Below, piece by piece: positions 4,727 to 64,000 of a stretch of DNA of 64,000 nucleotides. The notes below the pieces were generated by a model. It was not told the origin of the DNA, did not search any database, and was given only the letters and a program-made list of their open reading frames with translations. The stretch is from Oikopleura dioica (lineage: Eukaryota > Animalia > Chordata). Made by a program: the position numbers and the translations under genes. Where the stretch lies: contig OU015568.1 of the NCBI GenBank assembly GCA_907165135.1, positions 744,001 through 808,000 of the forward strand, in the 5' to 3' direction. Positions within the stretch are counted from its first letter, which is position 1, and every line of letters begins with the position of its first letter.

Positions 4727-5662
4727 ATGAAGATCTTCAGTCTCTTCTTTACCTTTTCCTTCGCAATTGAGGACTTCCTCCTCTTCAGCCTCCTCAATGG
4801 CAATTCTGGTTCCCAATCCCAGACATCCCAGATGAACACTCTCCTTCCCCTCCTCCTTCTCAGCGACAACAACAGTACAAGTGACAACACTGATCTCCTC
4901 ATGCTGACAATGATGTCCGGCGGAACAAACGACATGAATCAGCTCCTCCCGCTTTTGCTCCTCTCCGACGATTCTGGCGATACCGACATGCTCTCTACTT
5001 TTCTGCTTCTTTCAACAATGCAAGGCGACTGCAATGTCAACACCAACGACGCCATGACCAATCTCCTTCCGCTGCTTCTCTTCGCTGATGATGGCAGCTC
5101 GCTTGGATCAAGCTCTGATTCGCTCATGACAATGCTTCTTTTCTCCACCATGAGCGGCGGCGAGGGATTCAGCTTCGAGACTCTTCTGATGCTCGATTTG
5201 TTCTCCGACGGCTCCAGCCGAAAGCGACGATCGACTGATGACGGCCTCGACGATGTTCTGATGATGGTTCTTCTTAGCTCCATGTCCGGCGGCATGAACA
5301 CCCAGAGCGGCTTCGACAACTCCTTCAACTTGCTCCTCCCCCTTCTTCTCATGAACGACACTTCTAGCGATAGCGACAGCAGCTCCCTTCTTGTGTTGAT
5401 GATGGCAATGCAGAGCGCCGCCCCCGGAACTGGAATGGGCAGCAACATGCTTCTTCCTTTGATGCTAATGGACGACAGTGGAGACAACGAGAGCCTCATT
5501 TTCTACATGATGATGTTCGGAGCTGGCAACAACGGTGGATGCAACGCGGCTACTGTCACCCTCCCGGAACAGATTGTCCAGCCAGCTCACCCAGAACAGC
5601 CAGTGGTTATCTATCAACAACCAAACTACCGAACTGCCGGAAATTACGCCTACTTCGGATGA
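4727..5662 (+). CDS. Intronless secreted Leu/Met/Ser/Asp-rich repeat protein (311 aa)
   Basis: Long ORF with coding-like composition, N-terminal hydrophobic signal, five LLPL(L/M)L repeats separated by acidic Ser/Asp linkers, central RKRR, AATAAA ~80 nt after the stop. Confidence 0.8.
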   Translation: MKIFSLFFTFSFAIEDFLLFSLLNGNSGSQSQTSQMNTLLPLLLLSDNNSTSDNTDLLMLTMMSGGTNDMNQLLPLLLLSDDSGDTDMLSTFLLLSTMQGDCNVNTNDAMTNLLPLLLFADDGSSLGSSSDSLMTMLLFSTMSGGEGFSFETLLMLDLFSDGSSRKRRSTDDGLDDVLMMVLLSSMSGGMNTQSGFDNSFNLLLPLLLMNDTSSDSDSSSLLVLMMAMQSAAPGTGMGSNMLLPLMLMDDSGDNESLIFYMMMFGAGNNGGCNAATVTLPEQIVQPAHPEQPVVIYQQPNYRTAGNYAYFG

Positions 5663-6290
5663 AAAACTTCTATTATTTATGAAGAGTTACTGTTACTCAT
5701 TTTATTTCTGTCACTTATTACCTGTTTTTTATGCTTTGAAAATCAATAAAAGAATTCAACAAAAATTCTTTCTTTCAATAAGCAACGTGGCAAAGGGAAG
5801 CTGATTCTTACTGTAACCTGATGTAATTTTCCATCGTTTACCATTTGATCCCCTCGTACGGCTGACTGCTCGACCCGTCGTTTTTCATGTGCGCTTATTG
5901 ACGTCTATTTTAGCGTCGACTCATGTCTCTTTTCCATCTCCCTCCTAATTCTACGATCCAGCTCAATTTACGACAAAGACAAAGCATCAGTATTCTCTGG
6001 TTCATAATTCAGTGGATTCGTGAGGTCACGAAGAAAATTCGAAAATTGGTGGAGTTAATTGGCTCGCTCGGTGAAGTCACTGGCGATTATTGTATATCTT
6101 CACAATCAAAAGGTCTTATTTCAGTCTTTCATCATCCTTTTGGAATGCGTGAGAAAAGCTTAAAAATCTATAATTCATGATTGACAACGATTTATAGTTC
6201 AATTTATTATTGCTTTACAAATAACAGTAAAAATAAATCGCATTTGTAGAATATTCTTTGTATCCAGATTAAAGGCTACTGACATATCTT

Positions 6291-7304: not shown

Positions 7305-7652
7305 ATGAATCTCTGACTGTATTTCTCCTTATGTGCTATGATTTTTCTCCTATTTATTTAATAAACCTTATTTAAAAATACTTTCTTGCGTATTAATTTC
7401 AAAAAACTTGCATAAAAATCGACACAAAAAACTCAATTTGAATTGATGACGCAAAATCCCTATAAAAAGACACCACAAGAACACGTTTTTTCTTCATAAA
7501 AATGCAAATTCAACCTTTTTCTAAAAGCTCACCCCATGGCAATCCGCCGCGCCACTTGACAGCTATGAAATTTTCCATAATTTTTTCGCCTCCTTCAGAA
7601 ATTCGAATTTATTCAATCATCAAGAAAAAAAGTGGACAATGATTCATTGTCA

Positions 7653-8733
7653 ATGAAGCTTTTTGAAATATTTTTTCTAAGCGCAAGTGTTTCCGGGATC
7701 AACTGGCCTGGTGGGAGAAAACTGACCTGGAGAGAGCTTCAAGAGATCATTTATCGACCAGAAACGACTGATTTACAAGCCAGATCGCAGTTTAAAAAAT
7801 CCTGGGGAGCTCCGGTCGGCGGTAAATTTTTGCCGCACCAGAAATGCCCAGCTCTTCCGGAATTCAAAGACTCGACCGGTTACGAATGCGATGGGGCCTC
7901 CTGCGCCATCAAGTGTCGCCCGGGATTTCAGCCAATCGGAGAAGCGAGGACGAACTGCATCAGCTCTAGAAAATCAAAGCCAATTTGGACCAATACTATT
8001 CGCGGCTGTGGAAGTTGCGTGCCGCCAGTTTTCAGCGACTTCAATCTTCGGGACTTCTGCTTCGTCGAGAAAGACAAGAACCAGCGCGTTTGTAAGGTGA
8101 GATGTACCGACGGAGCTGATGCGCTGAAGGGACTGAAGAAGGGAGAGTTGAGATGTGTTTGTACGAAGAAACTTGGCTGCAGATGGTTCAGTGGGAAGAG
8201 GAAGAATAAACCGCTGAGATTGACCAAAGCTTGGTTTCCTTTGTTTGAAAATCAATTTGGCGGAAATCTTATTTTCTTTCTTATGATTTTTTTTGTGAAA
8301 ATCACAAATTTGAAACCAAAAAAGTCCAGTGCAAAGCCCGTGAAGAAATGCGAATTCTAGAGGAGCCGCTTACTTGTGACCAAAAGCCACCAGGGTGCTT
8401 TGATATTTGGAACAATATCGGTCAGTAACACAAGCGAGGAAACTCTCATCTTTTTTTTCAGAGATCTACAGAACCTGGAGCTGTGATACTTGCTACATGA
8501 TTGAGGCAGATCTCGTCCCGCCAAGTTCCTTCGACTCTTCGGACTTCTTCGAGCTTGGTCTGTCGACTCCAATCAAAGAAGCGATCCAATGGTCTTTCCC
8601 GGTGAAGTCCGTGAATCACACTGAAATCAACAACGAGAACATTGTCAAAATCGATTTTACAAACGGAGATTTGGCGTCGATTGAAAAAACTGGCTTCTGG
8701 AAAGTGAAATTTCAAATCGAAATCAAGGAATAG
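7653..8733 (+). CDS. Secreted Cys-rich protein with sushi/CCP-like modules (about 3 exons)
   Basis: Signal peptide MKLFEIFFLSASVSG; CAIKCRPGFQPIGEARTNC...WTNTIRGC pattern; downstream exons (~8300-8395, 8462-8733) continue with Cys-containing sequence; first intron boundary not resolved. Confidence 0.68.
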
Positions 8734-9049
8734 TTCAATTTTTTTTTATTTCTGGCTTATCAGTCATTAAATATGAACAAATTTCGAACTTAAAAGGCTG
8801 AGAAAAAGCCAAAGCTTGAATATGCCAAAGGATGCTTTTGCTCGGAAGAACCTCAAGTTGATATCGACTTATAAAAAATTGCACTTTTTATACCAAAAAT
8901 TTTGTAATAAATTGCTTCTTATTGTTTTTTCTCGAAAAATTTGTTTGATTCTTTTTCCCGAAACCCCTGACGATCTTAGTGCTGCTTCTCTCCTCCCCGC
9001 TTCGATCCAGGTTAAAATATTTGATCTTGAGTCAGGTTTATTCTTTGAA

Positions 9050-9469
9050 TTATTCTTCAAATAAGTCCTCATACGCTGGTGGCGCTTCGTTTTCAAATTT
9101 TTCCTCGTTTATTATTTCGAGATGCGTTGGAGCAGACGGACCCATAGACGAAAATGGTTGCTCTGTGATTACTTCTGAGTGATTCGGTGTTTCATCATCT
9201 GTTTCAACTTTACAGGAATCTTCACAGCAGAAAAACGGCGATAGTAAAAATAGACCTTCCTTAAAGATGATAACGCAGTCGTTTAAACAATCAAATGGTG
9301 AGTAGCAATCGTCGCACAGCCAAGTGCAGCAAAATAAATTTTTCGCAATGAGAAGAAAAAGTGGTTGTAGAATTGCGTAGACTGTCAAACAAGCGATCCA
9401 TGGAGGCGTTATAATAAAACACGCTAAATAATCGAGAAATGCCGAACATAGACCTCTCTTGCAGGCCAT
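9050..9469 (-). CDS. Small Cys-rich membrane protein with C-terminal PPxY motif (140 aa)
   Basis: Hydrophobic Cys-rich N-half (CFIITPPWIACLTVYAILQPLFLLI; CCTWLCDDC; FFCC), acidic tail ending APPAYEDLFEE. Confidence 0.6.
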   Translation of the reverse strand: MACKRGLCSAFLDYLACFIITPPWIACLTVYAILQPLFLLIAKNLFCCTWLCDDCYSPFDCLNDCVIIFKEGLFLLSPFFCCEDSCKVETDDETPNHSEVITEQPFSSMGPSAPTHLEIINEEKFENEAPPAYEDLFEE

Positions 9470-9782
9470 TTTTAGATAGAAAAGGGTCAAACTTTCACGG
9501 TAAAAGGGTAGAGATCGTTGTGTGTTGCATATTATTCTCGCTTTTTTGTGGACATTTTATTTACTTTAACAAAGAAGTGAAACGCCTTGTGAACCATATA
9601 CACGAAAATTTATTGTTGAAGAATCTTTACACTTAATATTTTTATGCACAGAATAAGATAAAAAAAGAGGATGAAAATCAGATATCAAGAAAGAAATTTG
9701 TGTTGTGAGAATAAGACTTGCCAGAATAAAGCAGATTTTACATTAGAGAAGGAGTTATTTTTAAGAGTAGGGATCTTCGCTT

Positions 9783-10508
9783 TTAGTAATCTTCCTCTTC
9801 GGCTCCTCCGTAGTAATCACCGACGATGCACTGTGGCTGGTCTGCCACGGGACGCTTGCCATACTCGGGCTCATCTAGACTCTGGTTAGGGTAGAGAGAG
9901 GGTGAAATTAGACGCGCTACTCCCCAATACATTAAAAAATATTGACTCTAACGCTAATTTTTCTTAAAATTTTTTTTTTAAATTAAAAAATTATTGGGTC
10001 ATATTTTCAATAAGGGGATCCCTTTGTTAGCTATCAATTTTTTATTTTCAAAAATAAGATTTTCGGATGTGAATACCCTTAAAAATGGTAAGTTATCGCT
10101 TCACGGCGAGTCTGGAGTAGGAAGGTGGAGCAAACTAAACCAAATCCGAAATTCAGGATTATACAGCAGTTGCCACCCCGGCTCGCAGAGAATTGACACC
10201 GAGCGGATGTTTTGGCTGAATCCGCGCGCAGATAATTCAAAACCATTAAGAGTGTCAAGGTTGAGCACACCCTGCGAGCAGGTGCACCCAGCCTCATCCC
10301 CTTAACTCGTGAAAATTTGTTTTGAATATCGTTCTAAGGGTATCTTCTACATGAAGTAGGACACTAACTCTCTGAAGCCCTTAGAGTCTACAACGCCTGC
10401 TCTGAATTCACGAGTCGCAGCTCTAGCGGCGGACAATGTTGACATGTTGTCACAAACTTGTTGGAAAAATGTAACAAGGGATGCGACAAGAGCGAAATTC
10501 AGCACCAT
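9783..10508 (-). CDS. Tentative small secreted protein with one sushi-like module
   Basis: Hand-joined exons MVLNFALVASLVT... / GCTCSQG...ILCEPGWQLL / ...DQPQCIVGDYYGGAEEEDY*; splice phases not fully resolved and plus-strand readings also exist. Confidence 0.3.
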
Positions 10509-22898: not shown

Positions 22899-25374
22899 AT
22901 GCGAGTTACTACGCATCCGAAAGTGCTGAGCAGAAGAAAGATAAAAAAATGGCTGAAAGGTTTTGTCAAAAAATTGAAGAGAGAGACGACCAGAGGCGAC
23001 CTAGATAGACTGATTTTGTCTGTGGAGAGAATGGAGTTTGAGAACAAAGACTCTGCCGGCTGGGACGAAGTTATATTTGAAAATGAAGGGGGAAAAATAA
23101 ACTCTGTTGATGACTGGGGAGGAAAAATTTCTGAAAAATGGAGCGTCACATCATTGCAAAAGAAGATACTCGATTTCAATAATGATTTTGAAAGAAGAAA
23201 AATTAAGAGATCCGAGTTGAAAGAAGAAAATGGAAGGTGGTTCGTTGATTCTAATCTTTGCGCGCAAATGATTTCAACTGGAGGAGAAGCTATCGTTTTG
23301 AAAGATCAATTCGGGGATCTTGAAGTTGCTGTTCGTGTTCAAGTTTTTGATACAGCTCTTTTAACGAAGAAGGAAAAAGTGCTTTGCTTTGATATTCATT
23401 TGTCACAAGGTATTTTTTTCTCATTTTGAACGATTTTTGATGAATTTAGATTACGATGTTGCAGAAAACGCCGATAATGATAGATCGAATTCGATTCCTG
23501 TGCACAAAAACGTCATCAAAAATTATGCAAATATCGAGATCTTCTCCGCCGCCGACAAGAGAAAGGAAGACTGTTTGGGCTGGATAACAATCATGGAAAT
23601 TTGTGATACGACTTTGAGATGTAAGCTCAAGGCTGAAAGCCTTAATTTGGACGAAAGAAAGAAAATTGCCATCGGAATCAAAAAGGGATACGAGTATTTG
23701 TCTACCGTTGAGATTTTGCACTACGGCCTGAAGCCCGAAAATCTTCTTTTGAAGAATGCAGTGCCCAAATGGATTGACTTTGGACTTGTTCGGGAGAAAA
23801 CTGGAAGAATGAGCTACGCAGAAATGGGATACACGAGGAGAGGAAGCAAATACAAAAAGTATAAATTTCTTTGTAAGTTTTGCTTTGAGTGAAATTGAAT
23901 TAAAATCTTTCTAGATGCAGGCTCTGCTGCATTCGCTACTAACTATCAGCTTTGTCCGACATATTTTCATCACCATGATTGCTCTAGCATCTATATTTTT
24001 ATCTTCAGCGATTGGGGAACTGCTTGGAGTCTCCATTTCAACCCAATTAAACCGGCTCCAAGAAATCTTATTCAAAATGATCTTAGAGTATGTGAATATC
24101 AAAAAAATTAAGATAAAAAATTCAGGTTTTGAACAACGGATGGATTGAGAACAAGGACGATCCGAGTATCAATGAAATAAAAAGTCTTCAGAAAATTATC
24201 TCTCTGAGAAACATTTCATCTTTTTTCTGCCTTGATGATCCAAATTTGACAAAGTCTTCCGCAATGGCTTAGTTGAAGCAGGAAATGACCAAGCAGATGA
24301 ACACTGATTTCATAAATTTGACAAAGAATGTTTTAATTCAAAAAGACACAAATCTCTGCGTTGCAATCTCAATCACGTCTCTTCTTCGATGGGCGATGAA
24401 AAATAATTTATGCCTGTCTTTTGGAAACGACAAATGTACTTTTGAAAAAATATTCATATTGCTGACAATGATGATTTACCCGCGAAGTCTGGCCGGTCTC
24501 AATCTCAATCCGAATAGACAAGAAAAGGAGTTTCAACACAACGAAATTGAAATTCTTCTGAAACGAATGAAATTCGAGACATTTTTGAATAAAAGTGGAT
24601 GGAAAATCATTCAATCTTTTGGCTATGTTCACGGCAATTTCAACTACAGACAAAACGGACAATTCCGGAACGGGCAATTCCGGAGATTTGAGGGAAATCG
24701 GTAAAATTTTTGTAAACGCACAATTCCGGAAATTTCAGACAAAAAATTCAACTGAGAGGTCTATTTTGTATATAGGACCACCTTTTCGCGAAATATTACG
24801 AATAATTTTCAGAAAAAAAATGAGAGAAGGGTCAAAAAAGCCATGAGTAGCACTAAAAAAGCCCATTTTCTGGTTGACACCCTTAAAAAGGCACTTTGGA
24901 AGCAAAAAATTTTCAATTAGAATTCGGACAATTCCGGAGATTTGGCGCTTTTCCCCGAAAAAAAAACTTCCGGAATTGTCCGTTTTGTCTGTACGAGCAA
25001 ATTCTCCTGCACAACGATTTTGTTTTCACTCGACCATTGACAGTAACTGGGGCCTATCTGAAGCCAAATGGCGACGTTATTTTCCACCAAATGGTTCTCG
25101 ACCGCGTCGAAAACGACCAATACGTTCTCCAAAATACTCTTCTTTCTCATTCTCCCCTCAAATTCGAGTTTTTCTGAAGAACCGTTACTATGCGAGTTTT
25201 GAGTTGATGAACGATTGTTTAAAATCCAGTGGCGACTTCAATTACTACGGAACTAACAGAGAATTCCTACAACTGGCGAATGAGAAATGTAAAAACATGA
25301 TCTCTGGCGAGTGGTATCTTCTTCCTCAAGCTTTCTCAATAACCCTTACGCGCGAGAACTCATTGCTTGTATGA
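22899..25374 (+). pseudogene. Protein kinase + papain-like Cys-His-Asn domain fusion, disabled
   Basis: Kinase motifs STGGEAIV, VAVR, HYGLKPEN, IDFG; then QKDTNLCVAIS and FHQMVLDRVENDQYVLQNT. Lesions: catalytic Asp replaced by Gly, in-frame TAG 24270-24272, MITE in exon 24647-24991. Confidence 0.7.
24647..24991. mobile_element. 345-bp TA-flanked MITE inserted in a coding exon
   Basis: Perfect 24-bp TIR CAGACAAAACGGACAATTCCGGAA; TA at 24645-46 and 24992-93; removing it restores GNFNYEQILL. Confidence 0.88.
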
Positions 25375-25480
25375 GGTTTACAAAATAAGAATCATTGTCA
25401 AAATCTGCCTATTTTATATTTTTCCAACAATTACTTACTTTTTCTTCTTATAAATAATAATATAAATGATTTATTATGCT

Positions 25481-25820
25481 TTAAAAATTTACATTTTGTC
25501 GATTTGTAATAAAAACGATGAGAATGAAAATTCCAGCCACAGCTGCGACGGCGCCGATGATAGCTGCGGAAATAGCAGCGCTAACAGTGATTTCGTATTT
25601 CATTGCGACGGAGGTGTTTTGGCCATCGACGATGGCCCATCGTAGACCTGAATTTTTGGTAATTGCCTTTTCTAGAGCCCATGTATCAAGAATCACAAAA
25701 AGAAATAAAAATTTAAGAGCTCGGGAAATATTAAATGCGCCCGAGTCCGACCTTCGTAAAATTAGTCATAAAAATCAACAAAGTCGAAAAATACCGTGAG
25801 TGTTATTTCCGCATCCAAAT
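25481..25820 (-). pseudogene. Truncated duplicate of the protocadherin transmembrane exon and adjacent intron
   Basis: DGQNTSVAMKYEITVSAAISAAIIGAVAAVAGIFILIV nearly identical to 31570-31700; intron motif AAATACCGTGAGTG..TTTCCGCATCCAAAT shared with ~31918-31948. Confidence 0.8.
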
Positions 25821-26199
25821 TATAAAAGAAAAATAAGAAATTGAATTAGATCTTAACATTTTTGCTCAATAGAGTTTTCGAATTTCGGATATCTGTAACC
25901 GCTGTCTCGCCGGTTTATTTTTTAACCCTCTTCTATCTGCCAGTTAATTCAGATTTTGTCTGATCAAGTTTCCCCGCATTTTTAGTCACGGAAATCCCGA
26001 TTCTCGTCGACCTCCCCCCCCTTTGTTTGAAGATCGCATATTTTCAGTAAAAGTCAACAGATAAGTTTTTTTCACGAGTCATTTTTTATCATATTTTGGT
26101 CGAGATGGCAGATAAAAAAGCAGTTATAAGTCCAGAGAAACGAGAGATACCAGCAATTTATTTAGATGGAAATTACAGATTCACATCCTTTCACAATCA

Positions 26200-27228
26200 T
26201 GAGAAGGTGAAAGAACCAACATTCATTCACAAGTGCAGAATTTGCTCGTAAGTTCGGCGTGATGAAAAAAATTGTTTGGTTTTTTAGTGTTATTTCGGAA
26301 AAGTTCTTCATTCATGATTGTGGCGACTATTCAATCGAAAACAATGCATTTTGCGTGGATTGTTCGTCACAAATTACCCGAAAAAGAAGATGTCATTGTC
26401 GAGTTTACTTTTTCTCTGATCATTACACTCGCAAACATCGGAACCGCATCCGCTTCAAATGCTTCTTCATGGAATGTAACTCTTCTTTGTCTTTTTACGA
26501 ATTTCTCGATCATTATCAACAACGCGGATCTTCCGCTAATCACTTTCAACCTCGGTTTATGCAGAGCACTCAAGGAGCAAGTGCGCCAATTTTTCCTCGG
26601 ATAACTATTTCTTCTCGTGTAGGACATAATAATCGTGTCAGTCTTCCCGAGGATATTGAGAGGGATCTCAACCTCCGAGAAAACGAAGTGCAATCATTAA
26701 GGGGGTAGTGCCTGATTTGATGAAAATCAAGATTATGAAATATTAAAAAATTGTCAAACCACGAAAACCAGGCACTACCCCTTTAAGAAATCAGTTCGAA
26801 AAAATTTACTCGGAAGAAAAAACCGTTACCCAACAACTTGATACGGTTAAAAAAAAGATCATTGAGAATTCTTCGATGATTGAGAGTCTTCTACAGGAGA
26901 ATGACGGACTTACACGAGAAAAAGAAAGCCTTGAGAAAAAACTTGAAATGATAACAGAAAGAAAGGAGGAAGCTCGATATAAGCAAACTGATTTATCAGA
27001 TCAAGGTTCAACCAAATGTTTTAGATAAAATTCATTATTTTCAAAGGGGCCGACGAGAATTGCTGCAAGATCTGTTTCTCGACATTCGACAGAAATCTCC
27101 ATCACCAATCCTGCATAACCAGATGCTTTCATACCTTTTGCTTTCAATGTCTCAACTCTCTCAATCCGAAGAACTGTCCTAGCTGCAGACAGCCGTTTCA
27201 AATGTCCGAAATTCAAAAACTCTATTGA
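26200..27228 (+). CDS. N-terminal RING-like zinc finger + coiled coil + C-terminal C3HC4 RING; MITE in exon (possibly spliced)
   Basis: HKCRIC/SVISEKFFIHDCG...FCVDC...CHC; coiled coil 26788-27005; last exon 27047-27228 CCKICFSTF...CFHTFCFQC...CPSCRQPF. Start codon not resolved. Confidence 0.68.
26701..26782. mobile_element. 82-bp TTAA-flanked MITE with GG..CC-type ends (Kolobok-like)
   Basis: TTAA 26697-700 | GGGGGTAGTGCCTG ... CAGGCACTACCCCT | TTAA 26783-86. Confidence 0.82.
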
Positions 27229-27360: not shown

Positions 27361-29942
27361 TCACAAACAGTAAAATTGATCAACTTGAAATAAAATCGGT
27401 CGATAAAATATTTCAGTGTGTTCATTGACGATTTTCGAGCTTTCAATCTTGTCACCATCCCAAACGAGCTTTCGAACGATGCCTTTACTAAAGAAGAAAT
27501 CAATAAAGTTAGTCAAAGAAGAAAAAATTACGGTTCCTGATCGCCGTTTACAAGAAAGATTGAGTTTCCTATTTTGATTGAAGAAGAATGATTTTGCTAA
27601 AACAGATCGCGACAAATGAAAAAAATTAAAAATAAATTACCTTTTCCTCAGTTTGTCCGACGACTGTCCATTTTAAGGATCGAAAAAGGAAAATGTCATG
27701 ATTAATTCCATATCTCCAACCCCCCAAAACGAGCAGCCCATTTTCTACTCCAACACAGGTGTGAAATCCCAATTTTCTACAAATTCATTATATTTGAAAT
27801 AAGATCAATTTTACTTAGGAATATCCGGAAGTTTCTCCCAGTTTACGGAGTTGAAACTCTCAACCGTTCCATGAGCTGATTTATCATCGCTCGAAGTCCA
27901 ACCACCTACCGCAACTGGCCGGTTCCCATCAATCGCTAAGCACGAGTGCTTATGAACAACCAGTGATTCAGGGCGAGTTGTTACTATTGATCCATCAAAT
28001 TCCTCACATTTTTTGAAGGTATCGTCTTCAAAGCAGATTAAAACTATTGCTTAATTATTAAAAGTAATTTTTGATCATTAACCAGATTGTCTATCGGCCA
28101 TTGTAACTGCACTCGATCGATGATTAACAGAAATTCCGAGCTTTGTGGTCATTTCAATGATTTTGAAGTTCTCGAGCATTGAAATCTGAAAATTTATAAC
28201 TATATTCTAACTTCTGTAAAAAGCGTACCCTGTTTATGTATCCTGAATAACCACCAAAAATATATATTTTACCGCGAATAGATGCCGCAATAGAATTATA
28301 AAGATAGTGGCGATCATGAGTTGAGTCTGGTTTCTGTATTTGCAAATCTTTTTTTGTTCCATCATCATCAAGAAGATATTTGACTGCGCCTTTGGTTCCA
28401 GCAAGAACAAACAGTGCATTTTTCATCATTTTGACGCAGTCAGGTTTTGTTTCTTCAAGCTTCAGTTTTGTAGTCGTTAGTTCTAGTGTTTCTATAATTG
28501 AAGACTTCTCGTAAGTACAATTTTGATTTTCATCCAAAAGATCTCCAACAACCCTCTTAAGCGCTTCCGTCTTGTCTTTTTCCTGGCCGATTTCATTAAT
28601 TCGTATTGAAATTTCAGATTCAAAGTTTTGTTGCTTTTCGACAATGTTTGCTTCGAGACGGAAAATTTCCTCACTTTTTTCGTCTTTCTCTGCGGCGCAT
28701 TTTTGATTTTCCTCAAGACTTCTCTCAATCAAATTAGTAAGGTTTTGATTTCTGTTTCTTTCTTCATCGAGCTCCGCAATTTTTTCATCGAGTTTGTCTT
28801 TATTATCTGTCAATTTTTCTTCGAACGAAAACTGCGTAAGAGTCGCATTAGTCAGGGTAATTTCTAGCTAATTTTCAAGCTGAGCATTTTTTGACTGAAG
28901 ATCGTGAACTTGTCTTGACAGGATTTTCACCCGCGAGATCAGTGAAGAAACTTCCTTCCTGAAACTTGAGTTTCTGCTTTCTTGTCTAGATCTTTTCAGT
29001 TGAAGATTTTCTGATTCTAGCTCTTCTCCGCGGCTAGGTTATCATTATTTAACAAGTAAAAGGTCTATCATACAGTTGACAAATTTCTTTATCGACTTGA
29101 GCTCGTTCAGATATTTTGTAAAGATTAATTATTTCCGACATCAATTTTTCCCTTTGAAATATTAAGTTTCGGACCTCTTGTTTCTGTTTGCCCATCAATT
29201 GTCTTTTTCAAAGTTCAAATAACAAATCAAAGGGTTAAGGGGGTAGAAACAGCTTTCTCGATTATGGACAGCAGCTGCATAAAAGTAAACATAAGATTTA
29301 TTTATGTTCACGGAATTTCCTGATAAATGTTCCTAGAAAAAGGGTTCAGCTTCACAAAAATGTGAAAGAAATTTGTTTAACTATCAGGGGACTCGAGATA
29401 TACGTGTTTAAAAATTTGGGAAAATCGAGAATTTCAGAGAGATGAGCTGCTTCTGAGCCCGCTTACTCAAAAATTTGATGACGAAAAAAAATTTCGAGAG
29501 AGATGTTCCTAGATCTAAGATGCATCTTTCGTAACCTGAAGAGAAAATTTGAAAATGTAAGATTCTCTTGTCTGTAGCGCCGGTCAAAAATCGTTTTTTT
29601 CAGAAAAAAGCTGTTTCTACCCCCTTAACGCAAAATTTGAAATAATTATAAAAATATTTCGGTATAATAAAAAATTTCAATTTCTGAACTTTAACGACAT
29701 TGAGCTAAATCAACTGATGGTTGAAAATTTCGCGCTTGAGTTTTATTATTATCATCGCAGAGACAATCGTTAAGCTGATGTTCTATCCGCTGCTTGCAGA
29801 TTTGAATGCACTCAGAATCAAAGCATCTACTGTTACAAAGCAAAAAACCAGCTTGAGCTGTTTCTTTGCATCTTGCCGAAGATTCGGGAGTGCATGACTT
29901 TCCAGCAGTTGTGTACCAAAGAAAAAAGAGAAATCTTATCAT
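27361..29942 (-). CDS. Secreted protein: signal peptide, Cys-rich module, long coiled coil, Kelch-like propeller
   Basis: MIRFLFFLWYTTA; CxxxC-rich exon; 28154-28813 heptad-rich ORF leading to IYIFGGY; later exons with VAVGGW, TVESF..WEKLPDIP; stop 27361. Confidence 0.62.
29239..29624. mobile_element. 386-bp TTAA-flanked non-autonomous element (Kolobok-like)
   Basis: TTAA 29235-38 and 29625-28; perfect 18-bp TIR GGGGGTAGAAACAGCTTT; intronic. Confidence 0.85.
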
Positions 29943-48800: not shown

Positions 48801-50828
48801 TGTTTTTCTATTAAGAAAATGACCTTTTTCGTGTCACTCTCTTATTTAACCCATTTTAGCTGAAGAAAAAAAATCTTAAAAGTCTATTTTTTCAACGAAA
48901 TGGTCGTTTTGTGCCACTTTCTTATCTTAACCTATTTTCGTCGACCCTTAGAAAATCATTCTTTATCAACCCTTTTTTTTTCTCAAAATAAGAGAAATCC
49001 TCAAATCCTCAAAGACAACAAACATATCGCCCCTTGAGCCGCTGGACAGTATCACTCGCCCAGAAACCCAAATATCCCCTTTTGTGTGCCCAGATATCGC
49101 TTGGCTCTAAAAGCGCCGGCGGCAAAGTCCCCAGACGCGCCGCAATAGTAAGACAGTAAGAAGCGCTAATCGCCTTTTGACCTTGTGCGACAGAAAAAAG
49201 GGACGAAAATAGCGGCCATTGATTTCCATTATCCCTGTTTATATTGGCGCTCTTCCTGTAAAAAGAAGAAATTCCAGTAGAAAAGAAGAAAAGAATTTCT
49301 AAAATTGGGAAGCTTACAGTTGTGTCGAAAATGCATTCTTTCTTTCTTCCACAAAGTGACTCGCGGTCGAGGGATTTCTTCAGCAGGACTTGCCCTGAGG
49401 CGAGAACTTCTACCAAGTCGGAATTCTTCTGCAATTGGAAAATCCTGAAGACAAAAAATATTAATTCAAGTTTTGACGAATAAAAGTTGAAAAAATACGA
49501 GAATTTTGACCAAAATTTTGGTCAAGTTTTAGGCCAAAATTTTAAGAAATGACCGGGTGGCGGGCGCCCAGGTTCACAATCGGTTGGTTCACAATTTTGT
49601 GAACCCGGTTCACAATTTTGTGAACCTGGTTCACAATTTCGGTCAAAAAAGTGACTCAAACTGACTAAAGGCGCGGCTGTAGAGAAAGTTTATAACGTCA
49701 AAAATGAGTTTCTCTTTGAAATCAGGCGCGGAGCGCATACAGACCCCTGATTTTATACTTTTAAAAATTTTGCGAACCGGGTTCACACAGATTGTGAACC
49801 GGGTTCACAAAATTGTGAACCGGGTTCACAATTGTGAACCTGGGCGCCCTACACCCAAATGACCCGAAAAAGAAACCATAAATCTGAAATTTCTTATGTT
49901 GCTCTTATATTTATTGATACGACATTTTCGATGGTAAATAAAAAGCTTCAGTATGAAAAGTAAACTCAACTATGTACAGTCGTTAACTCGCTCAAAACCA
50001 CTAAAAAATGCTCAAGGGAAAAAGTGTTGCTAGAAATTATTCAAACAAATGTCGACTTCCTCCACGTGTGAACCTCTCTTCTCAAAAACGGGTTGAAGCC
50101 GTGTTTCATCCCTTCTTTTCAAGAACAGTTCATATTCAAAACTCACTAGAACAAGTAAATGGGCGTAAGACGCTTTTTAGAACCTTTATTCTGTCAAATT
50201 CTATTAAAATGCATTTCTGCGAAAGTAGACAAGCGGGCTTATCGCTTTCTTGAATGTAATGGAAAACGAGGCCGGGCTTGAAATTTGAATTTATCAACAG
50301 CTCCAGCCTCGTGTTTCTGGCGCTGGGTGTTGTTTGGAAAAAACAGCTACCCGGAAAAATGATAAAATACAACTCAGCTGGGACGGGGCGCTTTTTAGAC
50401 ACTTTTTTCTAAACAAAAATCTCGGAAAAAAAATTCCAAAAGAGAAATTAACCCATCGACGCACAGATGACCAAATTTTTGTCTTTTCGCGAAAAAAATG
50501 CTAAAATTTTATTGACAATAAGAAGCTTGAAAATTTTAATTTTTTTTTTCGCGAAAAGATCAAAATTTTGTCCTCTGTGCGTCGATGGGTTAATTCCTCT
50601 TTTGCTTGAAAGACAAAGAAGACGCTGATTATCAATATTTTTTTGTAAAAAAATTATTTTTTTTTAAGTAAGCTCTAGAATTAGATACCTTTTTATGTCA
50701 GTCCTATCAAATGTGAGTGAGTTGAGGTTGAAAAGCTGCTCTCCAGATCTGAGTCCTTCCGGAACCGAAATTTTCTTCGTCTTCGAGGCGGCCAGAATGC
50801 TCCACGCCAAAACTGATAACCATAATAC
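30813..50828 (-). CDS. Delta-type (delta2-like) protocadherin, at least 12 exons over ~20 kb; ATG exon not found
   Basis: Exons ~50689-50828 (signal, ISVPEG), 49316-49445 (LDRESLCG), 44281-44540, 43632-43950, 41541-41682, 38280-38390, 37988-38159, 35760-36035, 33680-33838, 31311-31700 (TM, DSGRGES = CM1), 31047-31172 (CLTLGHSDACWLP = CM2), 30813-30962. Repeated LDRE/DxNDN/AxDxD motifs. Apparent 1-nt frameshift at ~38363-38372. Confidence 0.9.
32570..32730. repeat. AAATAAGGGT(G/A)TCAC inverted-repeat family (also ~36120-36220, 36850-36985, 37605-37755, 53000-53165)
   Basis: Motif and its reverse complement GTGACACCCTTATTT recur in both orientations many times; no transposase seen. Confidence 0.6.
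33545..33688. repeat. Interstitial telomeric (CCCTAA)n arrays interleaved with duplicated splice-donor sequence
   Basis: About 8 CCCTAA units 33573-33620 and 3 units 33655-33672; TAGAATACCTAACCT(C/G)AAAAGT at 33545 and 33633. Confidence 0.85.
38496..38588. mobile_element. MITE, CCTGASTCAGG family (short form)
   Basis: CCTGTGTTGAAAACCTGAGTCAGGATTT ... AAATCCTGACACAGGTTTTCAACACAGG. Confidence 0.75.
41219..41351. mobile_element. MITE, CCTGASTCAGG family
   Basis: Same termini, two internal GCCGC-N-GCGGC hairpins. Confidence 0.7.
42985..43360. repeat. GTAGTAAT/ATTACTAC tandem and inverted minisatellite
   Basis: Two clusters sharing TGGTAGTAATGGTAGTATGTAGTAGCA (~43046 and ~43318) with inverted TTACTACA units. 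Confidence 0.7.
43403..43549. mobile_element. MITE, CCTGASTCAGG family
   Basis: AAACCTGAGTCAGGG ... CCCTGAGTCAGGTTTTCTACACAGG. Confidence 0.68.
45649..45981. mobile_element. 333-bp TTAA-flanked element with GG..CC ends (Kolobok-like, second subfamily)
   Basis: TTAA|GGACCCCGTCAGCT ... AGCTGACGGGGGGTCC|TTAA. Confidence 0.75.
49562..49849. mobile_element. Foldback-like MITE with GGTTCACAA..TTGTGAACC internal palindromes
   Basis: TIR GGGCGCCCAGGTTCACAAT / ATTGTGAACCTGGGCGCCC; tandem palindromic subterminal units at both ends. Confidence 0.75.
50452..50589. mobile_element. 138-bp piggyBac-type MITE
   Basis: TTAA|CCCATCGACGCACAGA ... TCTGTGCGTCGATGGG|TTAA; most of the element is self-complementary. 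Confidence 0.82.
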
Positions 50829-56355: not shown

Positions 56356-57210
56356 CAGAGTTGCAAATTTTGTGAGCTAGCTGAGCTGAGCTATCTGAGC
56401 TTGCTGAGCTACAGGTCAGCTCAGCTCAGCTCAGTAATTTTGAGGTGAGGGTCAGCTCAGCTCAGCTCAATTTGACCTCAGCTCAGCAAGCTCAGCTCAA
56501 TGGCTACACGACGTTTTGACTAAACCGACGTTCTCGCTAACCGACGTTTTCGCTAAACCGACGTTCTCACTAAAAGTCAAAACGTCGGTTTAGTCAAAAC
56601 GTCGGTTTAGTCAAAACGTCGGTTTTCTCTAAAAATGCGGGGGGGAATCAGAGCGAATGAGAATAGGCACTTCCTGGATTAAAAATTCTGTCTAAAGCCT
56701 GCCGTCGTCCTCAAACCGAAATTTCCTTAAATTGTTAACTTGGAAAAACAAAATATATATTTTTTAATTTATTATTTTAAAATTATTATTTGAATAACAA
56801 AATCAATAATTTTGGAAAATATTAACTCTGCATAATTTACTGATCTTTTTACATTTTATCGGTGTTGAAATCATTTTTAAAAGATTTATTTTAGTTATAT
56901 TAGTTAATTTAATGAAGATATTCATTATTCTTATACTTTTACTCTTCACAAAGATCTTTCGAAAGATAATGAAAACGTCGGTTCGACGAGAACGTCGGTT
57001 TCCAAACTGAGTCTTAACCAAATTCAAGGCGCCCACGCATTTTTAAGGAAAACCGACGTTTTGACTAGACCGACGTTTTGACTAAACCGACGTTTTGACT
57101 TTTGGTGAGAACGTCGGTTTAGCGAAAACGTCGGTTAGCGAGAACGGCCCAGCTCAATGGTTCTTCGAAAAGAGCCAGCTCAGCTAGCTCAGCTCAGCTC
57201 AGTCTATTGA
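56356..57210. repeat. (AGCTC)n-rich element starting CAGAGTTGCAAATT, interrupted by a nested element
   Basis: Arrays of AGCTC/GAGCT on both sides of 56502-57149; same left end as the 57800 copy. Confidence 0.65.
56502..57149. mobile_element. Mutator/foldback-like element with ~115-bp TIRs of ACCGACGTTT units
   Basis: GG...CC ends; 9-bp direct repeat CAGCTCAAT at 56493-501 and 57150-158. Confidence 0.75.
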
Positions 57211-57799: not shown

Positions 57800-58245
57800 C
57801 AGAGTTGCAAATTTGCTGAGCTGAGCGACCGCTCAGCTCACTCAGCCAGCTCAGCTCAGTGATTTTGGAAAATGATCTGATCTGCTCAGCTCAGCTAACC
57901 TCAGACAATTTTCACTCAGCTCAGCTCAGCTCAGCTCAATTTTTTGAATATGATCTGTTCTGCTCAGCTCAGACAACTATCACTTAGCTCAGCTCAATGA
58001 TTTGAATACAATTTTACTACCAGAAAACAGTAAAAAACAACTCAGCTCAGCTCAATCAGCTCAGCTCAGCTCTAATTAGGGTCCGCTCAGCTCAGCTCAA
58101 CTCTCTTAAACAAAAGGTCTGCTCAGCTCAGCTCCGCTTTATGACCTCTGAAAAAGGCCAGCTCAGCTCAGCTCAGTTTCCTTCGGAATAGGCCAGCTCA
58201 GCTCAGCTCAGAGAAATTTTTACTTAGGTCAGCTCAGCTCTGCTC
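57800..58245. repeat. Second (AGCTC)n-rich element copy
   Basis: Starts CAGAGTTGCAAATTTGCTGAGCTGAGC; many CAGCT/AGCTC units; abuts the GC-richer island. Confidence 0.65.
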
Positions 58246-58568
58246 GGAAAAAATAACAAAGTGGTTCAAATAACTTGCAAAAGGCTCACTTCCTAAGCTA
58301 GAAGACCTGCTGAAAGAAGACAACAATTTTGTAGTTGCCAGAGCCAAAGAGCACCTGGACTTCAAACATGTTATGAACAGAACTTGAAAAGAAGCTCACC
58401 TGTGGGTTGACTCTCTTGGAATGAGGTCGTCAACTCCACAGGCAAGATGCACAGCTTGATAAACAAGGGCGCCAAACGCGAGACTTCAACCGAATTCGAT
58501 CTTCGCTTGATTTCGTCGCTGAACTCTCGTGAAGGGTCGAATATGCGGGTCGCGTGGCCCCCAAGCTT

Positions 58569-59372
58569 CTAGTGATGTCGAGCGTTTCGCTTCTTCTTCT
58601 TCGGTTCGACGACTTCTTCCTCCATGATATCGAGCAGTTCGCTGTCCGGCGTTTCAAACTCATCAGACTCCGAGGAGACAACTTCCTTCACGATCTGGCG
58701 TGACCGCTTGTTCGCCTTCGTTGTAGTCGTTACTCGCAGGGAAGATGTCTTCTTCGCCGACTTCGAAACCGCGTTCCGACGAACTCTCTTCTTCGGTTTT
58801 CGCGAAGTTGTACCTGATGATGTTCCTGGTTCGTTAATGAACTCCAGTTCAGGCAGAGGAAGAAGATCGTCGTCGCTCTCGTTCTTTATTTCAACTCCGA
58901 GCTCTACTACTTCCTGCAACGATGTTTCGAGCGTTGCATTCAACAGCTGCTGGTCCTGTTCATGAACTTCATCCCCAGGGTATCCGTGGGGAAACCAAAT
59001 GGCGTCTCCACTCGCCATCACTTCGCCCTGAACTTGAGCTAGCCTGACGTAGACGTCCATCCGGCCCGACAAGCAGTTCCAGATGCCCAACGGGATCGCC
59101 TTCTGAAGTCTGCGACCCTTGGCACCGTATTCATCGCCGGATTGGATGGTAACAGCTTCCGAGAACTTGGCTTCCATCTCGAAATGACGACGGTGCGCCA
59201 GTTCCCCCATCAACGACGGTGACGATAGCTCATCCAAGTCCTTCTCCAATTTTTGAAGAATCTTGATCGCCCGGCGTGTGGATGGTCCAAGTTCCTGCTG
59301 TCGTTTCTCGTCAAACTCGTGCGGTTTGAAAGCAGTCCGCAAAACTGCTCTGCTATCTTCGGTGTTCAACAT
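58569..59372 (-). CDS. Intronless 267-aa orphan with acidic tail and NLS-like basic clusters
   Basis: Uninterrupted ORF; RKPKKRVRR and PKKKKR; no domain recognised. Confidence 0.65.
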   Translation of the reverse strand: MLNTEDSRAVLRTAFKPHEFDEKRQQELGPSTRRAIKILQKLEKDLDELSSPSLMGELAHRRHFEMEAKFSEAVTIQSGDEYGAKGRRLQKAIPLGIWNCLSGRMDVYVRLAQVQGEVMASGDAIWFPHGYPGDEVHEQDQQLLNATLETSLQEVVELGVEIKNESDDDLLPLPELEFINEPGTSSGTTSRKPKKRVRRNAVSKSAKKTSSLRVTTTTKANKRSRQIVKEVVSSESDEFETPDSELLDIMEEEVVEPKKKKRNARHH

Positions 59373-59832
59373 CTCTTGAACTTAGTTCGGCTCTGACTGG
59401 CGGATTTTCCACTCATCGACCGTTTTTAAATGGCGATGTTTTCCAGCTTCAAATCTACCTCGAGCGCCATGTTTTCCAGCTGAACTTGTTTTCCAGTCAT
59501 CGAGTTCATCCGATTTCTCGGGCTCGAGCCATTTTCAAAACACGCTCGGCCAATCAGCTCGCTACAAATGGAGGACCGTTTCTCCCATTTCGCTGCACTT
59601 GCTTGACCTACAGATCTTTCATCTTCATCCTTCTGCCAGAGAAATTTTCCAGAGAAAACGTCTCCTATGAAGATTTCATCAAGTTCAACCTTCTTCGTTC
59701 TGCAACTTTGAGATGTGTACCAGTTCTTGCACTTTCTTCTTTTTATATTTAAATTTTTTTATTTTTCGAGAAAGAGTTCTTTCCTTCAAAAACTTCTTTC
59801 TTCAGCATAGATCATCGAAGTCCGTTGTTGTG

Positions 59833-62800
59833 ATGCCTGTCGTTCGATATGTCTCGACCGGCACTTCTGACGACTCCAGGAGCGACTCTTCGTCTTCCCC
59901 GCCGTCTTCAACTCCAACTTCCCTCGTTCTCCGCGACCACTTCTATCCTGAAATGTCGGGGATTTATCGTCGAGATCCAGGCGTTGGCGGTGATTCGCCT
60001 TCCTTCTCCACGATTACCGGTTTCACCGGCATTTCCAGTTCCACTGGCTTCTCTCGCTTCGTTCCGGATGAGCCCGTGCCCATCTTCTCGCTCGCAGTTC
60101 TCCCTGTGGCGCAGCCCAGCCTCCCTGACTACTCAAAGCGGGTGCCCTGTATCGCCAGTCGCCCGAATGCTGACCTCGGGTACGAGCAAGATGAGCTAAG
60201 TCGACTACTCTTCGCACCTGGTAACCCAGCGTCTGGAACCGAGGATTGGATTACTCCCCCTCAAATTCTTGTTGGTTTCCTCAACGCTCGTCACATGGAC
60301 TCGTCTCATGATGCCGACTTCTCTCATCCTCGCGACGTGGAGCAGCTTCATCCATCTACCGGAGAGTTGTGGGCTGTGAAACGAAGACGTCTCGGAGCTC
60401 CACCACCTACTCCTCGAGTTCTTGCTGTAGATTCAGGTCGTCCCGCGAACTCCTGGAGTATCCATCCTTCGTTCAGCGCACGATCAACTGCCCGTGATGA
60501 AGCTGATCAAGAAGCTACTTGGCGCGTTGAGTCTGGAACTGTCGATGCTGCCCTTGCCGTTGCAACTCATCGTTCCGTCGGCACCGGGACTTCTTTGGGC
60601 TTTCCGGATCTGCTCGCCCGCGATGTTGATTCCCTTCGCAGAGGTACATCGCTTCTGGCTCCGATTGAAACCCCTGTAAAATCGCGAAGTAAGTTCATCA
60701 ATGTTGAAATCAACTAGTAACTTCGGTCATTTAGATTTGGCGTCTGCTAGTGAAGTTTCTCGTTTTTGCGAGACTTATCGTCATGACCGTGTTTATCGTC
60801 AGCTCGGGTTGGAGCGGTATCTTCCGGTTCTCGGCCACAATCAGCCTATCGACGATACCTGCCACGCGCTGTTTCGCCCAACCCCTGACTCTCGGTTCAC
60901 CGTACCACTTCTGCCGAAGTCATCATCGCTTGGTCTTCCCGGTCCCGACTACTATCCTTGCGAGTGGCCTGATCGCTTCTGCTCTGACCCTGACTACGCT
61001 GGATACGACATCGAGGAAGACATTCAAGCTGCTCGCGACGCGTTTGCTGCTGCCGGAGGCCAGATGCATGTGCTGGAGCATACTCGAGTTCGTCACAACG
61101 TGGAGTTGTTTGATCACTCTCGCGTCTACCGAACTGTAGTCGTAGTTCCTCCAGGTACGATGTGAACCGTTCAACTAGTATTCAACAAGTTCTAGATAAT
61201 GATGTCCGAACGCAGGGCAATCTTCTTCCTGATCCGCTCGAAGTTGGCTTGTTCGATCAGCTGACCAAAGGTGGCTACGCTGATGCTTCTGTTCTTGATC
61301 GTATCGACTTCGGCAAGTCGCTCTGTACTCTAGGATCTCCAACCGTTCTTGATACTGCTACCGGAACTGGTTTCTTGGTGAGTCATCGTTTTCGCGCAGA
61401 TTTTTGACTTCTTCTTTTCAGTCCGAGTTGTTGGATGATCCACGTTACTGGGATCCAGAGCGCGGTGTGACCCGTCTTGCCGATTTGTTGTCGCCGATTT
61501 TACGATCACGGGACTGGTTCGACCCTTCTTCTCCTCTTTGGCGCCCCGATATCCAGCAGATTCATCATCGGAACGACTGCTTGCACTGGGGTTATCCGCT
61601 CACTGAGGGTCTCGGTGAGAATCCCTTCGGATACGAAGGTTTCACGTTAGTGCTTATTAACTTCTGCACTTTTTAATAATTTTATTTTTCAGGTTGGCTG
61701 ACACGATCTTCGCTGCTTGTCGTCTTGAGCATCTTTATCCGAAGGAGACTGATCGTCGGGTCATCTGCTTGATTCTTGGCTTGGATGTGAACTCGATTCG
61801 TCCACTGTTCCTCATCTCGCCATTTGAGATGTATCAGCTTCAGCTCGCCAACATGATCCGCCCTTACACGCTGGTCAATCGAGATGACGGTGACGTACCA
61901 CGTGATCCTGAGTGTCCTCTTGGACGAGAACGACTCCGGCTTCTCGATGTTGGTCATTGGTCGACCCAGGCGGCTGATGTCGACGCACATGGCTTAGGAG
62001 TCCTCGAAGTTGCCTTGATTGGACTCTCCGTTCTTGCAGCTGAGTTCTCCCTGACGCCAATCTGCTCTCTCGATGGTGAACCGGCCTTCTATTTTGATCA
62101 TAGGGCGCGGTTTCATGATGGATTGATCCTCAGCGGTGGCAACGGTGGTCTCAAGCGAGGTGCTTCATTTCTCGCAGCTCTACTTTGTGGCTGTCGCCCG
62201 TCCACCGATGCTGATCCGTCAACGATTCGTGATGGTGCTTCCGGTTCTGGAACAAGCAAGGAAGTGTCGGCTCCGAAGTGCTACTACGATGCAACTACTG
62301 GACGCCGATTCCCGCCCGTTCCGTCGTTGACTGGACTTCGTCCTGGCGAGTCCGTTGTGGCCCCGTACCAGTCCAAGTTCGTGCGATCCACCGCTTTCTC
62401 CGACGAAGCCGAACCTATTCGTCATGTTGGCATGACTGGCTACTCCTTGAAACGACTTGACGGTGGTGAGTCTTCCAGTCGAATTCTTCTTGAGTTCCTC
62501 GACTCACTTATGTTCGTGAGTTTGAAGGTGAGTCGACCCTCTCTGTACTTCATTTCGTGACTTGTGATCTATTTAGCAACCGGAGCCGCTGTGTACGCCA
62601 CTGTGAAGCATTTGCAGCAGAAGGGATCGTACTCGATGGGTGAAAGAACTTCCAACCGCTTCCCATATCGTAAGTCGATGAAGACTAGTGGGATGAAACC
62701 CATTGAATCTTGAATTCAGAGCTTCTTCCTGCTAGTTTCCAGGAGTGGTACGCGGCTGGAGCTCATTGTAAGTACTATGGAGGTACAACTCGCGACGTTG

Positions 62801-63237
62801 TCGACACGATTCTCGGTATGTTATCCGATGCCGAACGTCTGACTCTCCACGGTGGTGAATGTCTCTTCCCCTTGTTTCGAGGTCGAGAGGTAAATGTTTC
62901 TGGTAAGTGTAGTTTGTTGGTGATTTGATGTTTTACATGATTTGTACTTGATCCGTTGGTTTTTCATCTTGTTTTAGTTCACTTCGGACGCCGTGCTACG
63001 TTCGCCAGGAGCTCGACTCGCGGCTTGTGTCACCGCTACGCTTCGGGGCTTGCCAAGTATCAACTCGACGAACGTGGTGATCCTGTCGGTCTCAATGAAG
63101 AGGAGCGTGAAGCTCTGCTACGACGTATTGATGCTGATAAAGCCTCAGCTCTTGTCCCTCTGGCGAATCCAGCCGGAGAAACTGGAGGAACTGTTGAATC
63201 CTCGACTGCTGAAGATGATTCGAACTTGGCCGATTGA
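59833..63237 (+). CDS. 8-exon orphan gene, ~998 aa, all GT-AG introns
   Basis: Exons 59833-60688, 60735-61154, 61190-61377, 61422-61645, 61693-62465, 62577-62669, 62720-62902, 62978-63237 total 2997 nt with every phase matching; the exon 5/6 junction has alternative donors (62466, 62516, 62528). Confidence 0.75.
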
Positions 63238-63506
63238 GCATTATGCTCAGTACTCCGACCTCATCCAACGTAAGTTTTATTGTACGTCGTAGCAAGTTGA
63301 CAACGGAGTTTGTAGTGATGGTGTCCTCAACTGGTTTTCACCCAACTTACGACTGTTCCATCTCTACAGAAACTACCACGGCGGCGGCGAAGAAGCAAGA
63401 TGAAGAAAAAAATTTGAAGAGAACTGTTCCTACTCTGTAGTTCCATGTACCAACGCTTGATCGAGTTCCAAACTGCAGGCGTAATAAATTTACCCGTCGT
63501 GGCCAC

Positions 63507-64000
63507 TTACATGTAATCTTCACTTCTGTAGCGATCTGGTTCTCTTCTTGTCCTTGAGCTTGTGCGGATCTTTAGTTTATCAAGATCCGACTCATTTAAC
63601 GCAGAAGAAGATGCTACAGAGTGGAACGAGCAATCCTCGCTCGACTCGTTGTTTTGTACAGTTTCGTCTGTCTCGTTTAGATCTGTTTCTGGTGAAGCTG
63701 TCCACACTCCCGTGTCTCCTGTTGTTAGTAACCGGCTCACGATGTTGTTCGAACACCAAAGCCCGAATGAGGATTTCAGCGTCTTCGACGGAGTTGATTG
63801 CTTCGGTGAAACTTCAATTTCTGGTGCTGGCGTCGGTGGTAATGTCGATTTCGGCCCGAGGGAGATTGCTGAGTCATCGAGAAGGTCGATTCGATGAGCT
63901 CTTGGTCCCAGATGGTTCTCGTCGGCTTCTTCCCATACTGACACGTCTTCAGGTTGCATCAGCCACAATCTAGCCATCGGATTCGACAGTAAGTTATCGC
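63507..64000 (-). mobile_element. Probable C-terminus of a Ty3/gypsy-type (Tor-like) Pol/integrase, running off the window end
   Basis: Frame open to 64000; Pro/Ser/Thr/Glu linker ending RTSSRTRREPDRY, resembling the R-S-x-R-x-R-x-P-x-R-Y tail of gypsy-family integrases; A-rich coding strand. No catalytic core is in the window. Confidence 0.5.

Follow-up and report, generated by a model that had tools for sequence, protein, structure and literature searches.

The last 5.7 kb of a 64,000-nucleotide stretch of the PAR chromosome of Oikopleura dioica OKI2018_I69 (assembly GCA_907165135.1, record OU015568.1) probably represent the 3' portion of a retroelement that was copied recently and that carries a spliced gene antisense to its own genes and, on its sense strand, an open reading frame (ORF) of 267 residues. 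The whole stretch is referred to here as the window, and a window position equals the position in the record minus 744,000. The mobile unit occupied positions 58256-64000, with its sense strand on the minus strand of the window, and was delimited by blastn comparison with a second copy on chromosome 2 and by a shift in GC content and AT skew. Within it, the end of a reverse transcriptase (RT)/RNase H gene, the antisense multi-exon gene, the 267-residue ORF and a non-coding terminal region followed one another from the window end down to the boundary at 58256.

A second copy with a shared boundary

The copy on chromosome 2 (OU015567.1, same assembly) was 99.86% identical to the unit over 5747 bp, from window position 63999 down to 58256. 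Overall the two copies differed by five substitutions and three single-base indel columns, two of the latter falling in homopolymer runs. Past 58256 the two loci were unrelated, with CTCAG arrays at the PAR locus and other sequence and a trypsin gene at the chromosome 2 locus. Because the second copy matched down to 58256 and the flanks differed, all three genes travel together, a point that the original prediction, which was made from the letters of the window alone, had proposed to check. The RT-gene tail, the plus-strand gene, the 267-residue ORF and a 313-bp terminus co-occurred at two chromosomal sites with one common boundary, which the copy comparison moved from the predicted position of about 58270 to 58256. 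The two known copies lay on different chromosomes and had the 3' end at 58256 in common, while the other end of the unit was outside the window. At chromosome 2 the insertion was located about 1.6 kb from a gene for an 888-residue protein with a trypsin domain (positions 7325-10060 of the chromosome 2 locus), and at the PAR chromosome no called gene was found within 4.6 kb beyond the end of the insertion.

Base composition changed at the same point. The GC content was 0.505 in 58256-64000 vs 0.390 across the remaining window, and the AT skew of the plus strand was -0.184 vs 0.001. In 2-kb intervals the GC content rose from 0.33-0.455 before 58 kb to 0.48-0.53 after it, and past 58 kb the plus strand was T-rich, with an AT skew of -0.12 to -0.22; none of the 113 such intervals outside the unit exceeded a GC content of 0.455 or an absolute AT skew of 0.105. 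The shift started at 58256, the position at which the similarity between both copies ended. The earlier description of DNA that becomes GC-richer from about 58.3 kb and has an A-rich minus strand throughout was borne out for the unit as a whole, except that the terminal 313 bp (58256-58568) were skewed in the opposite direction, the plus strand AT skew being +0.152 there and -0.18 to -0.25 in the rest of the unit.

This terminal region, on the minus strand and non-coding, was common to both copies with two single-base indel columns. No repeat of 58256-58600 was found anywhere else in the window by blastn or repeat search. In the sense of the element, the 3' end of the unit read ...TTTGT in both copies, and the flanks diverged straight after it. 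On the host side, the CTCAG arrays ended exactly at the element boundary (58255/58256). These pentamer arrays filled the host flank (56373-56501 and 57885-58250) with periods of 5, 14, 19 and 30-35 nt. A 90-nt segment inside the terminal region (58310-58399, minus strand) started with GTGAGC and ended with TTTCAG, resembling a host intron.

The codon positions of the three unit genes were compared with those of eight host ORFs, which served as proxies for host coding sequence. GC content at codon positions 1 and 2 was high in all three unit genes, unlike in the eight host ORFs. The third-position AT skew was -0.47 on the strand of the antisense gene, and +0.10 and +0.33 on the strand of the sense ORFs. 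These values amount to one strand-wide bias that is independent of coding direction. Such a bias fits a unit that has long been copied via an A-rich minus-sense RNA, although the skew argument is just moderate, since a skew of -0.32 was seen in one host-side ORF.

The RT/RNase H gene and the class of the element

The region was assigned to a retroelement because the minus-strand gene at the window end has RT and RNase H domains. The window held the C-terminal 163 codons and the stop codon of this gene (63507-64000, minus strand), which runs off the window; the corresponding ORF at 63507-63977, open to the window end, was present as predicted. The deposited gene calls gave products of 1301 residues for the window copy and 1365 residues for the chromosome 2 copy, and RVT_1, RT_RNaseH_2 and RT_RNaseH were recorded for both in a precomputed Pfam table, with the domains lying outside the window. 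The part of the gene within the window was identical in both copies. These records support the assignment to a retroelement that had been suggested from the letters, and they supplied the RT and RNase H domains for which the original prediction had proposed to look beyond the window; the integrase core named with them had no match on record. The further claim of a gypsy integrase tail at 63507-64000 was not borne out, since a Pfam search of the 163-residue tail returned no family at E<=1 and a PDB search returned no integrase. The earlier alternative of a Maverick/Polinton or Ginger element was ruled out for the window-end gene by its RT and RNase H domains, and no scanned ORF of the window matched a Maverick or Ginger Pfam family.

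The element may be either of the long terminal repeat (LTR), Tor-like class or of the tyrosine-recombinase, DIRS-like class. No Pfam family of tyrosine recombinases or methyltransferases was recorded for the 1301- and 1365-residue products, and such domains often escape Pfam. A repeat search of 58200-64000 for LTR-like, split or inverted terminal repeats returned short chance pairs only. Purine-rich runs were found at the extreme end of the 267-residue ORF and directly past its stop codon, but these runs could not be assigned as a polypurine tract without an LTR start. The renewed search thus had the same outcome as the first reading of the window, in which no LTR or convincing polypurine tract had been seen.

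Structure of the antisense gene

The antisense multi-exon gene (Oidioi.mRNA.OKI2018_I69.PAR.g8582, P0002) was located at 59833-63440 on the plus strand, with a deposited model of 1055 residues, and its chromosome 2 paralogue (chr2.g6485, P0006) had a deposited model of 1065 residues. Mapping of the deposited models onto the DNA revealed eight canonical GT-AG introns of 41-88 nt and nine exons common to both copies; the median intron of the O. dioica genome is 49 nt (PMC8008620). The GC content was 0.356 in the introns of the gene vs 0.541 in its exons. Between the copies, the gene differed by two synonymous substitutions, one non-synonymous substitution, one intronic substitution and one single-base indel in the coding span. 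The original prediction of a plus-strand gene was right in its multi-exon structure, while its eight exons and about 998 residues gave way to the eight introns and 1055 or 1065 residues of the deposited models. At 62956-63292 (plus strand), two overlapping open frames ran across the penultimate exon, of which the deposited models use 62978-63268. The alternative frame at 62956-63237 (plus strand) ends in a stop codon and may underlie the earlier figure of about 998 residues.

Past the stop codon of the antisense gene, an AATAAA motif was read from the plus strand at 63483-63488, 19 nt away from the RT stop codon on the opposite strand. The stop codons of the two genes were 66 bp apart. With the antisense stop codon and the AATAAA motif within 70 bp of the RT stop codon, the sense and antisense RNAs should overlap. 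On the minus strand, no ORF longer than 102 residues was found between 59372 and 63507. The protein-level relatives of one of its exons show that the antisense gene is real; it codes for a conserved protein, and its introns are of the host type.

Relatives and conserved domain of the antisense protein

The largest exon (61694-62464) was used as a HMMER query against 1.84 billion representative sequences. The only matches were P0002 itself and three fragment clusters (180-201 residues, 49-54% identity), with E values of 1e-39 to 9e-20. A profile word search extended the relatives to seven clusters with profile E values down to 1e-106, which were 40-49% identical to the window exon globally and 43-56% identical by best local alignment. 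All of these relatives were ORFs on marine-metagenome contigs of 0.9-5.6 kb, and among themselves they formed four to five deep lineages with 38-53% identity. Their ORFs began at the codon with which the window exon begins, and they all stopped a few residues past an invariant Pro-Val, in a manner resembling a splice donor of the form GTnAG that has been translated through. The metagenome relatives therefore look like exons of intron-bearing genes. The word search found no full-length relative of the antisense protein outside its own cluster, and no orthologue of the 1055-residue protein was found in annotated proteomes outside this assembly, including the other public proteomes of O. dioica. 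This lack of orthologues elsewhere would be expected of a mobile element more than of a host gene.

HMMER, profile word search and alignment placed the conserved domain in the first ~173 residues of the exon (61694-62212, plus strand). The eight-sequence alignment of the exon contained 30 invariant columns, among which were Asp95, Asp97, His99, Glu105, Glu117, Asp135, His136, Arg139, His141, Lys154 and eight glycines (numbering of the exon translation). The invariant Asp, His, Glu, Arg and Lys residues together with the glycine-rich turns were read as a putative catalytic or metal-binding site. The antisense protein had a hydrophilic N-terminus, no signal peptide and one moderately hydrophobic internal stretch. 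In the PDB searches, a match of a serine/threonine-rich tail to a designed coat-protein chain (0.005) was due to low complexity and was dismissed.

The 267-residue ORF and the spacer

The intronless ORF of 267 residues (P0001) was present at 58569-59372 on the minus strand, where it had been predicted, and is read in the sense of the element. The encoded protein was the same at both copies, with one synonymous difference in the DNA. No relative was found among 5.8 billion proteins by word search, and the protein matched no Pfam family and no PDB entry. It had neither a hydrophobic segment nor a hydrophobic N-terminus (maximum 19-residue hydropathy 0.62), and its C-terminal third alternated between basic and acidic residues. 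On this evidence it is classed as an orphan accessory ORF. An Env-like identity was considered for both accessory proteins and was excluded by hydropathy.

The 267-residue ORF and the antisense gene diverged from a 460-bp spacer (59373-59832), which was identical between the copies and is a candidate internal two-way promoter. TATA-like runs in the spacer faced both ways, at 59744-59753 on the plus strand and at 59423-59430 on the minus strand, and a CCAAT motif was found at 59550-59554. Exact TTTTCCAG sites were concentrated in the spacer, which held four of the seven sites on both strands of the 64-kb window, where about 0.04 were expected. All four were on the plus strand between 59439 and 59652, three of them within 58 bp. 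These sites may be factor-binding sites of the putative internal promoter. A promoter function of the spacer was inferred by analogy with Tor3b/4b, in which env has an internal promoter (PMC4402516), and with maize Grande, whose gene23 has a promoter of its own (PMC7264820).

Proposed mechanism and alternative explanations

If the unit is a retroelement as proposed, its genomic RNA would correspond to the minus strand of the window, and two accessory genes would lie downstream of the RT/RNase H gene, namely the 3.6-kb, nine-exon antisense gene and the sense 267-residue ORF. Retroelements are expected to be intron-poor, as they pass through a spliced or spliceable RNA, and the sense-strand genes would need to be intronless or to evade splicing. 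The antisense gene would retain its introns through copying, because on the full-length RNA its splice sites are present as reverse complements, which are invisible to the spliceosome. Its orientation would thus account for the fact that only this gene has introns, and the nine-exon gene would illustrate how antisense introns survive. The antisense gene and the 267-residue ORF would be transcribed outward from the 460-bp spacer, independently of the terminal promoter of the element, and the antisense protein would act on the life cycle of the element or on the control of the element by the host. PAR.g8582, chr2.g6485 and the 267-residue ORF are accordingly regarded as probably genes of the element and not host genes. 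A more far-reaching version is put forward tentatively, and we hold it with clearly less confidence than the assignment to a recently copied retroelement. According to this version, a larvacean retroelement lineage has long carried a multi-exon antisense gene for a new enzyme-like protein family, with an internal two-way promoter and with introns saved by their orientation, and the metagenome relatives represent the same gene in sister elements.

Several observations weigh against the retroelement interpretation. The unit is known from just two copies, and of its ends one is in view. In the part that is visible, neither a terminal repeat nor a target-site duplication came to light, nor did a primer-binding site or a convincing polypurine tract, and the 3' end of both copies lacks the canonical ...CA of LTR elements. 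Neither an integrase core (rve) nor an integrase zinc finger was recorded for the 1301- and 1365-residue products, for which the gene models or the table may be incomplete. T-rich third codon positions were also seen in some host ORFs, with skews down to -0.32. The deposited model of the window copy of the antisense gene bridges the single-base indel of the coding span by an extra, implausibly short intron that is absent from the chromosome 2 model, and this indel is either a frameshift in the window copy or a one-base error of the Nanopore-based assembly. Searches for known relatives of the antisense protein gave nothing in Pfam at E<=1 for the exon pieces, both deposited models and the metagenome relatives, and sequence and profile searches of the PDB found no relative of the exon, the whole protein or two alignments. 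The AlphaFold2 models were unusable, with a mean predicted local distance difference test (pLDDT) score of 33 both for the whole of P0006 and for the conserved exon with its alignment. The functions of the accessory proteins are guesses; we guess that the antisense protein is an enzyme and not a structural or envelope protein, and that the 267-residue protein might be located in the nucleus.

The retroelement interpretation was weighed against three other explanations. The antisense gene and the 267-residue ORF could be host genes beside a retroelement that ends just past 63507, all copied jointly by segmental duplication. The low copy number suits this explanation, as do the host-normal intron sizes and splice sites of the antisense gene and the lack of a visible terminal repeat at 58256-58568; in addition, the last exon of the plus-strand gene and its AATAAA motif lie within 70 bp of the RT stop codon, like convergent genes in a compact genome. 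We nevertheless consider it unlikely, because the shift in GC content and skew spans all 5.7 kb and begins exactly at the duplication boundary, and because the coding composition of the plus-strand gene is like that of the RT tail and the 267-residue ORF and not like that of the host proxies. The 66 bp between the stop codons are also too short to accommodate a terminal repeat outside the plus-strand gene, and no orthologue of this gene is found in other annotated proteomes, even though further proteomes of O. dioica are publicly available.

A nested or composite unit seems somewhat less probable still. Here the antisense gene, with or without the 267-residue ORF, would come from a second element or a gene fragment that was inserted in reverse shortly before the last copying and that is passive, with no role. 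Neither accessory gene resembles a known Tor gene or a named protein, which would be in line with such an origin, and the small number of known copies agrees with it as well. On the other hand, neither 59373-63440 nor 58569-63440 is bordered by internal repeats or element ends, the uniform strand-wide bias across the parts argues for long co-residence, and the deep lineages mark the antisense gene as a member of an old family and not as a single chance capture, whatever the surroundings of these relatives. The remaining explanation, in which the plus-strand gene is a prediction artefact on a T-rich, stop-poor strand opposite real minus-strand coding sequence, is very improbable. GC-rich DNA does yield long chance ORFs, and several overlapping ORFs were present on both strands; the 3' exons have the alternative open frame at 62956-63237, and one deposited model requires an implausibly short intron. 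Yet one exon has protein-level matches among independent metagenome ORFs, with 30 columns invariant in the alignment, the eight introns are canonical and host-sized with a GC content 0.19 below that of the exons, and the minus strand between 59372 and 63507 lacks any ORF longer than 102 residues. For the central exon, an artefact is largely refuted.

Other features of the window

The second-richest GC stretch of the window was at 4001-6000 (0.455) and contained overlapping ORFs of 311 residues (4727-5662, plus strand) and 186 residues (4939-5499, minus strand). The 311-residue ORF had no Pfam match, and its GC content at third codon positions was 0.66. This stretch may be another repeat or the remnant of an element. 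Pieces of host genes were found at 22899-26708 (plus strand), 28154-28813 (minus strand) and 49009-49434 (minus strand), with a protein kinase domain exon (E value 7e-10), weak Kelch motifs and a weak cadherin-like match among them. In the host sequence before the unit, a 17-nt tandem unit was present at 56509-56625 and 57050-57146, the second time inverted, and a 115-bp repeat (56529-56643 vs 57032-57146, 95.7% identical) had the look of a miniature inverted-repeat transposable element or a foldback element. Scans for tRNA genes and Rfam families found none across the whole 64-kb window.

Comparison with known systems

Among the annotated repeats of this assembly, elements of the Tor group predominate (PMC8008620). 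The unit resembles them in its host species, in having RT and RNase H, in the very high identity of its copies and in an extra gene downstream of pol, the likeness of pol being judged by description. Tor3b/4b have a third gene downstream of pol that is expressed from an internal promoter (PMC4402516). The third gene of Tor elements lies on the sense strand and encodes a membrane-anchored, Env-like glycoprotein, whereas the large gene of the unit is antisense and spliced, and both accessory proteins of the unit lack a signal peptide and any convincing membrane anchor. Tor Pol is annotated with Pfam integrase domains (PMC4402516), while no Pfam-recognisable integrase is on record for the unit. 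In PMC4402516, the gag, pol and env genes of Tor elements are co-oriented and an antisense gene is not mentioned; the first account of Tor (Volff et al. 2004) was not covered. The arrangement with a spliced antisense gene is not described for O. dioica elements in the papers covered here.

OdDIRS1 and DIRS1-like elements have also been reported in O. dioica (PMC2685390; PMC3266345). DIRS1-like, Ngaro and PAT elements have an RT and RNase H of the LTR type, lack a DDE integrase and do not have TG...CA termini; the unit resembles them in its RT and RNase H, in that no integrase core is on record for it, and in a 3' end other than ...CA. The described DIRS1-like elements are shorter than 6 kb and have three co-oriented ORFs (PMC3266345), whereas the unit is at least 9 kb long by its gene lengths and has an antisense gene.

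Among antisense genes of other systems, HBZ of the human T-lymphotropic viruses provides an analogy only. The HBZ transcript is spliced. As cited in PMC7264820, the HBZ gene is opposite to the genomic RNA and has its own promoter on the 3' side, in the same way as is proposed for the antisense gene of the unit. HBZ is a small basic leucine zipper (bZIP) regulator expressed from the 3' LTR, whereas the gene of the unit is many times larger and has eight introns. The two show no likeness in sequence, though no sequences were compared.

The closest known kind is the plant antisense ORF between pol and the 3' LTR. Such ORFs, called aORF-3R, are found in Ty3/gypsy elements such as maize Grande (gene23), rice RIRE2, Silene Retand and Phaseolus PvRetro13, and among the extra ORFs (eORFs) of the Tat lineage (PMC7264820; PMC4408406). 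Gene23 of Grande is transcribed from a separate promoter that precedes it, and most aORF-3R products are without known function (PMC7264820; PMC4408406). Introns in plant antisense ORFs are not mentioned in the review PMC7264820. In the unit, the antisense gene is likewise opposite to the RT gene and downstream of it, being placed at 59833-63440 (plus strand) between 63507 and 58256 in both copies. The plant genes are single ORFs, whereas the gene of the unit is found in a chordate host, has nine exons and 1055-1065 codons, and is accompanied by a second, sense ORF back to back with it. Some plant aORF-3R products have a PMD or transposase-28 domain, and neither domain was found in P0002 or its relatives by Pfam at E<=1.

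An animal retroelement in a genome that ranks among the most compact of any animal would here hold a 3.6-kb accessory gene, which is bigger than most host genes. If the association between the element and the antisense gene is old, the conserved domain would define a protein family, as yet without an assigned fold or function, found only together with these elements, whose members would be candidate regulators of the element or of its control by the host, and antisense extra ORFs, which have so far been mainly a plant matter, would extend to chordates. Should the tentative version of a lineage that has long carried this gene prove true, the antisense gene of O. dioica would be an animal counterpart of the plant and retroviral antisense genes and the first of them with a full host-like exon-intron structure.

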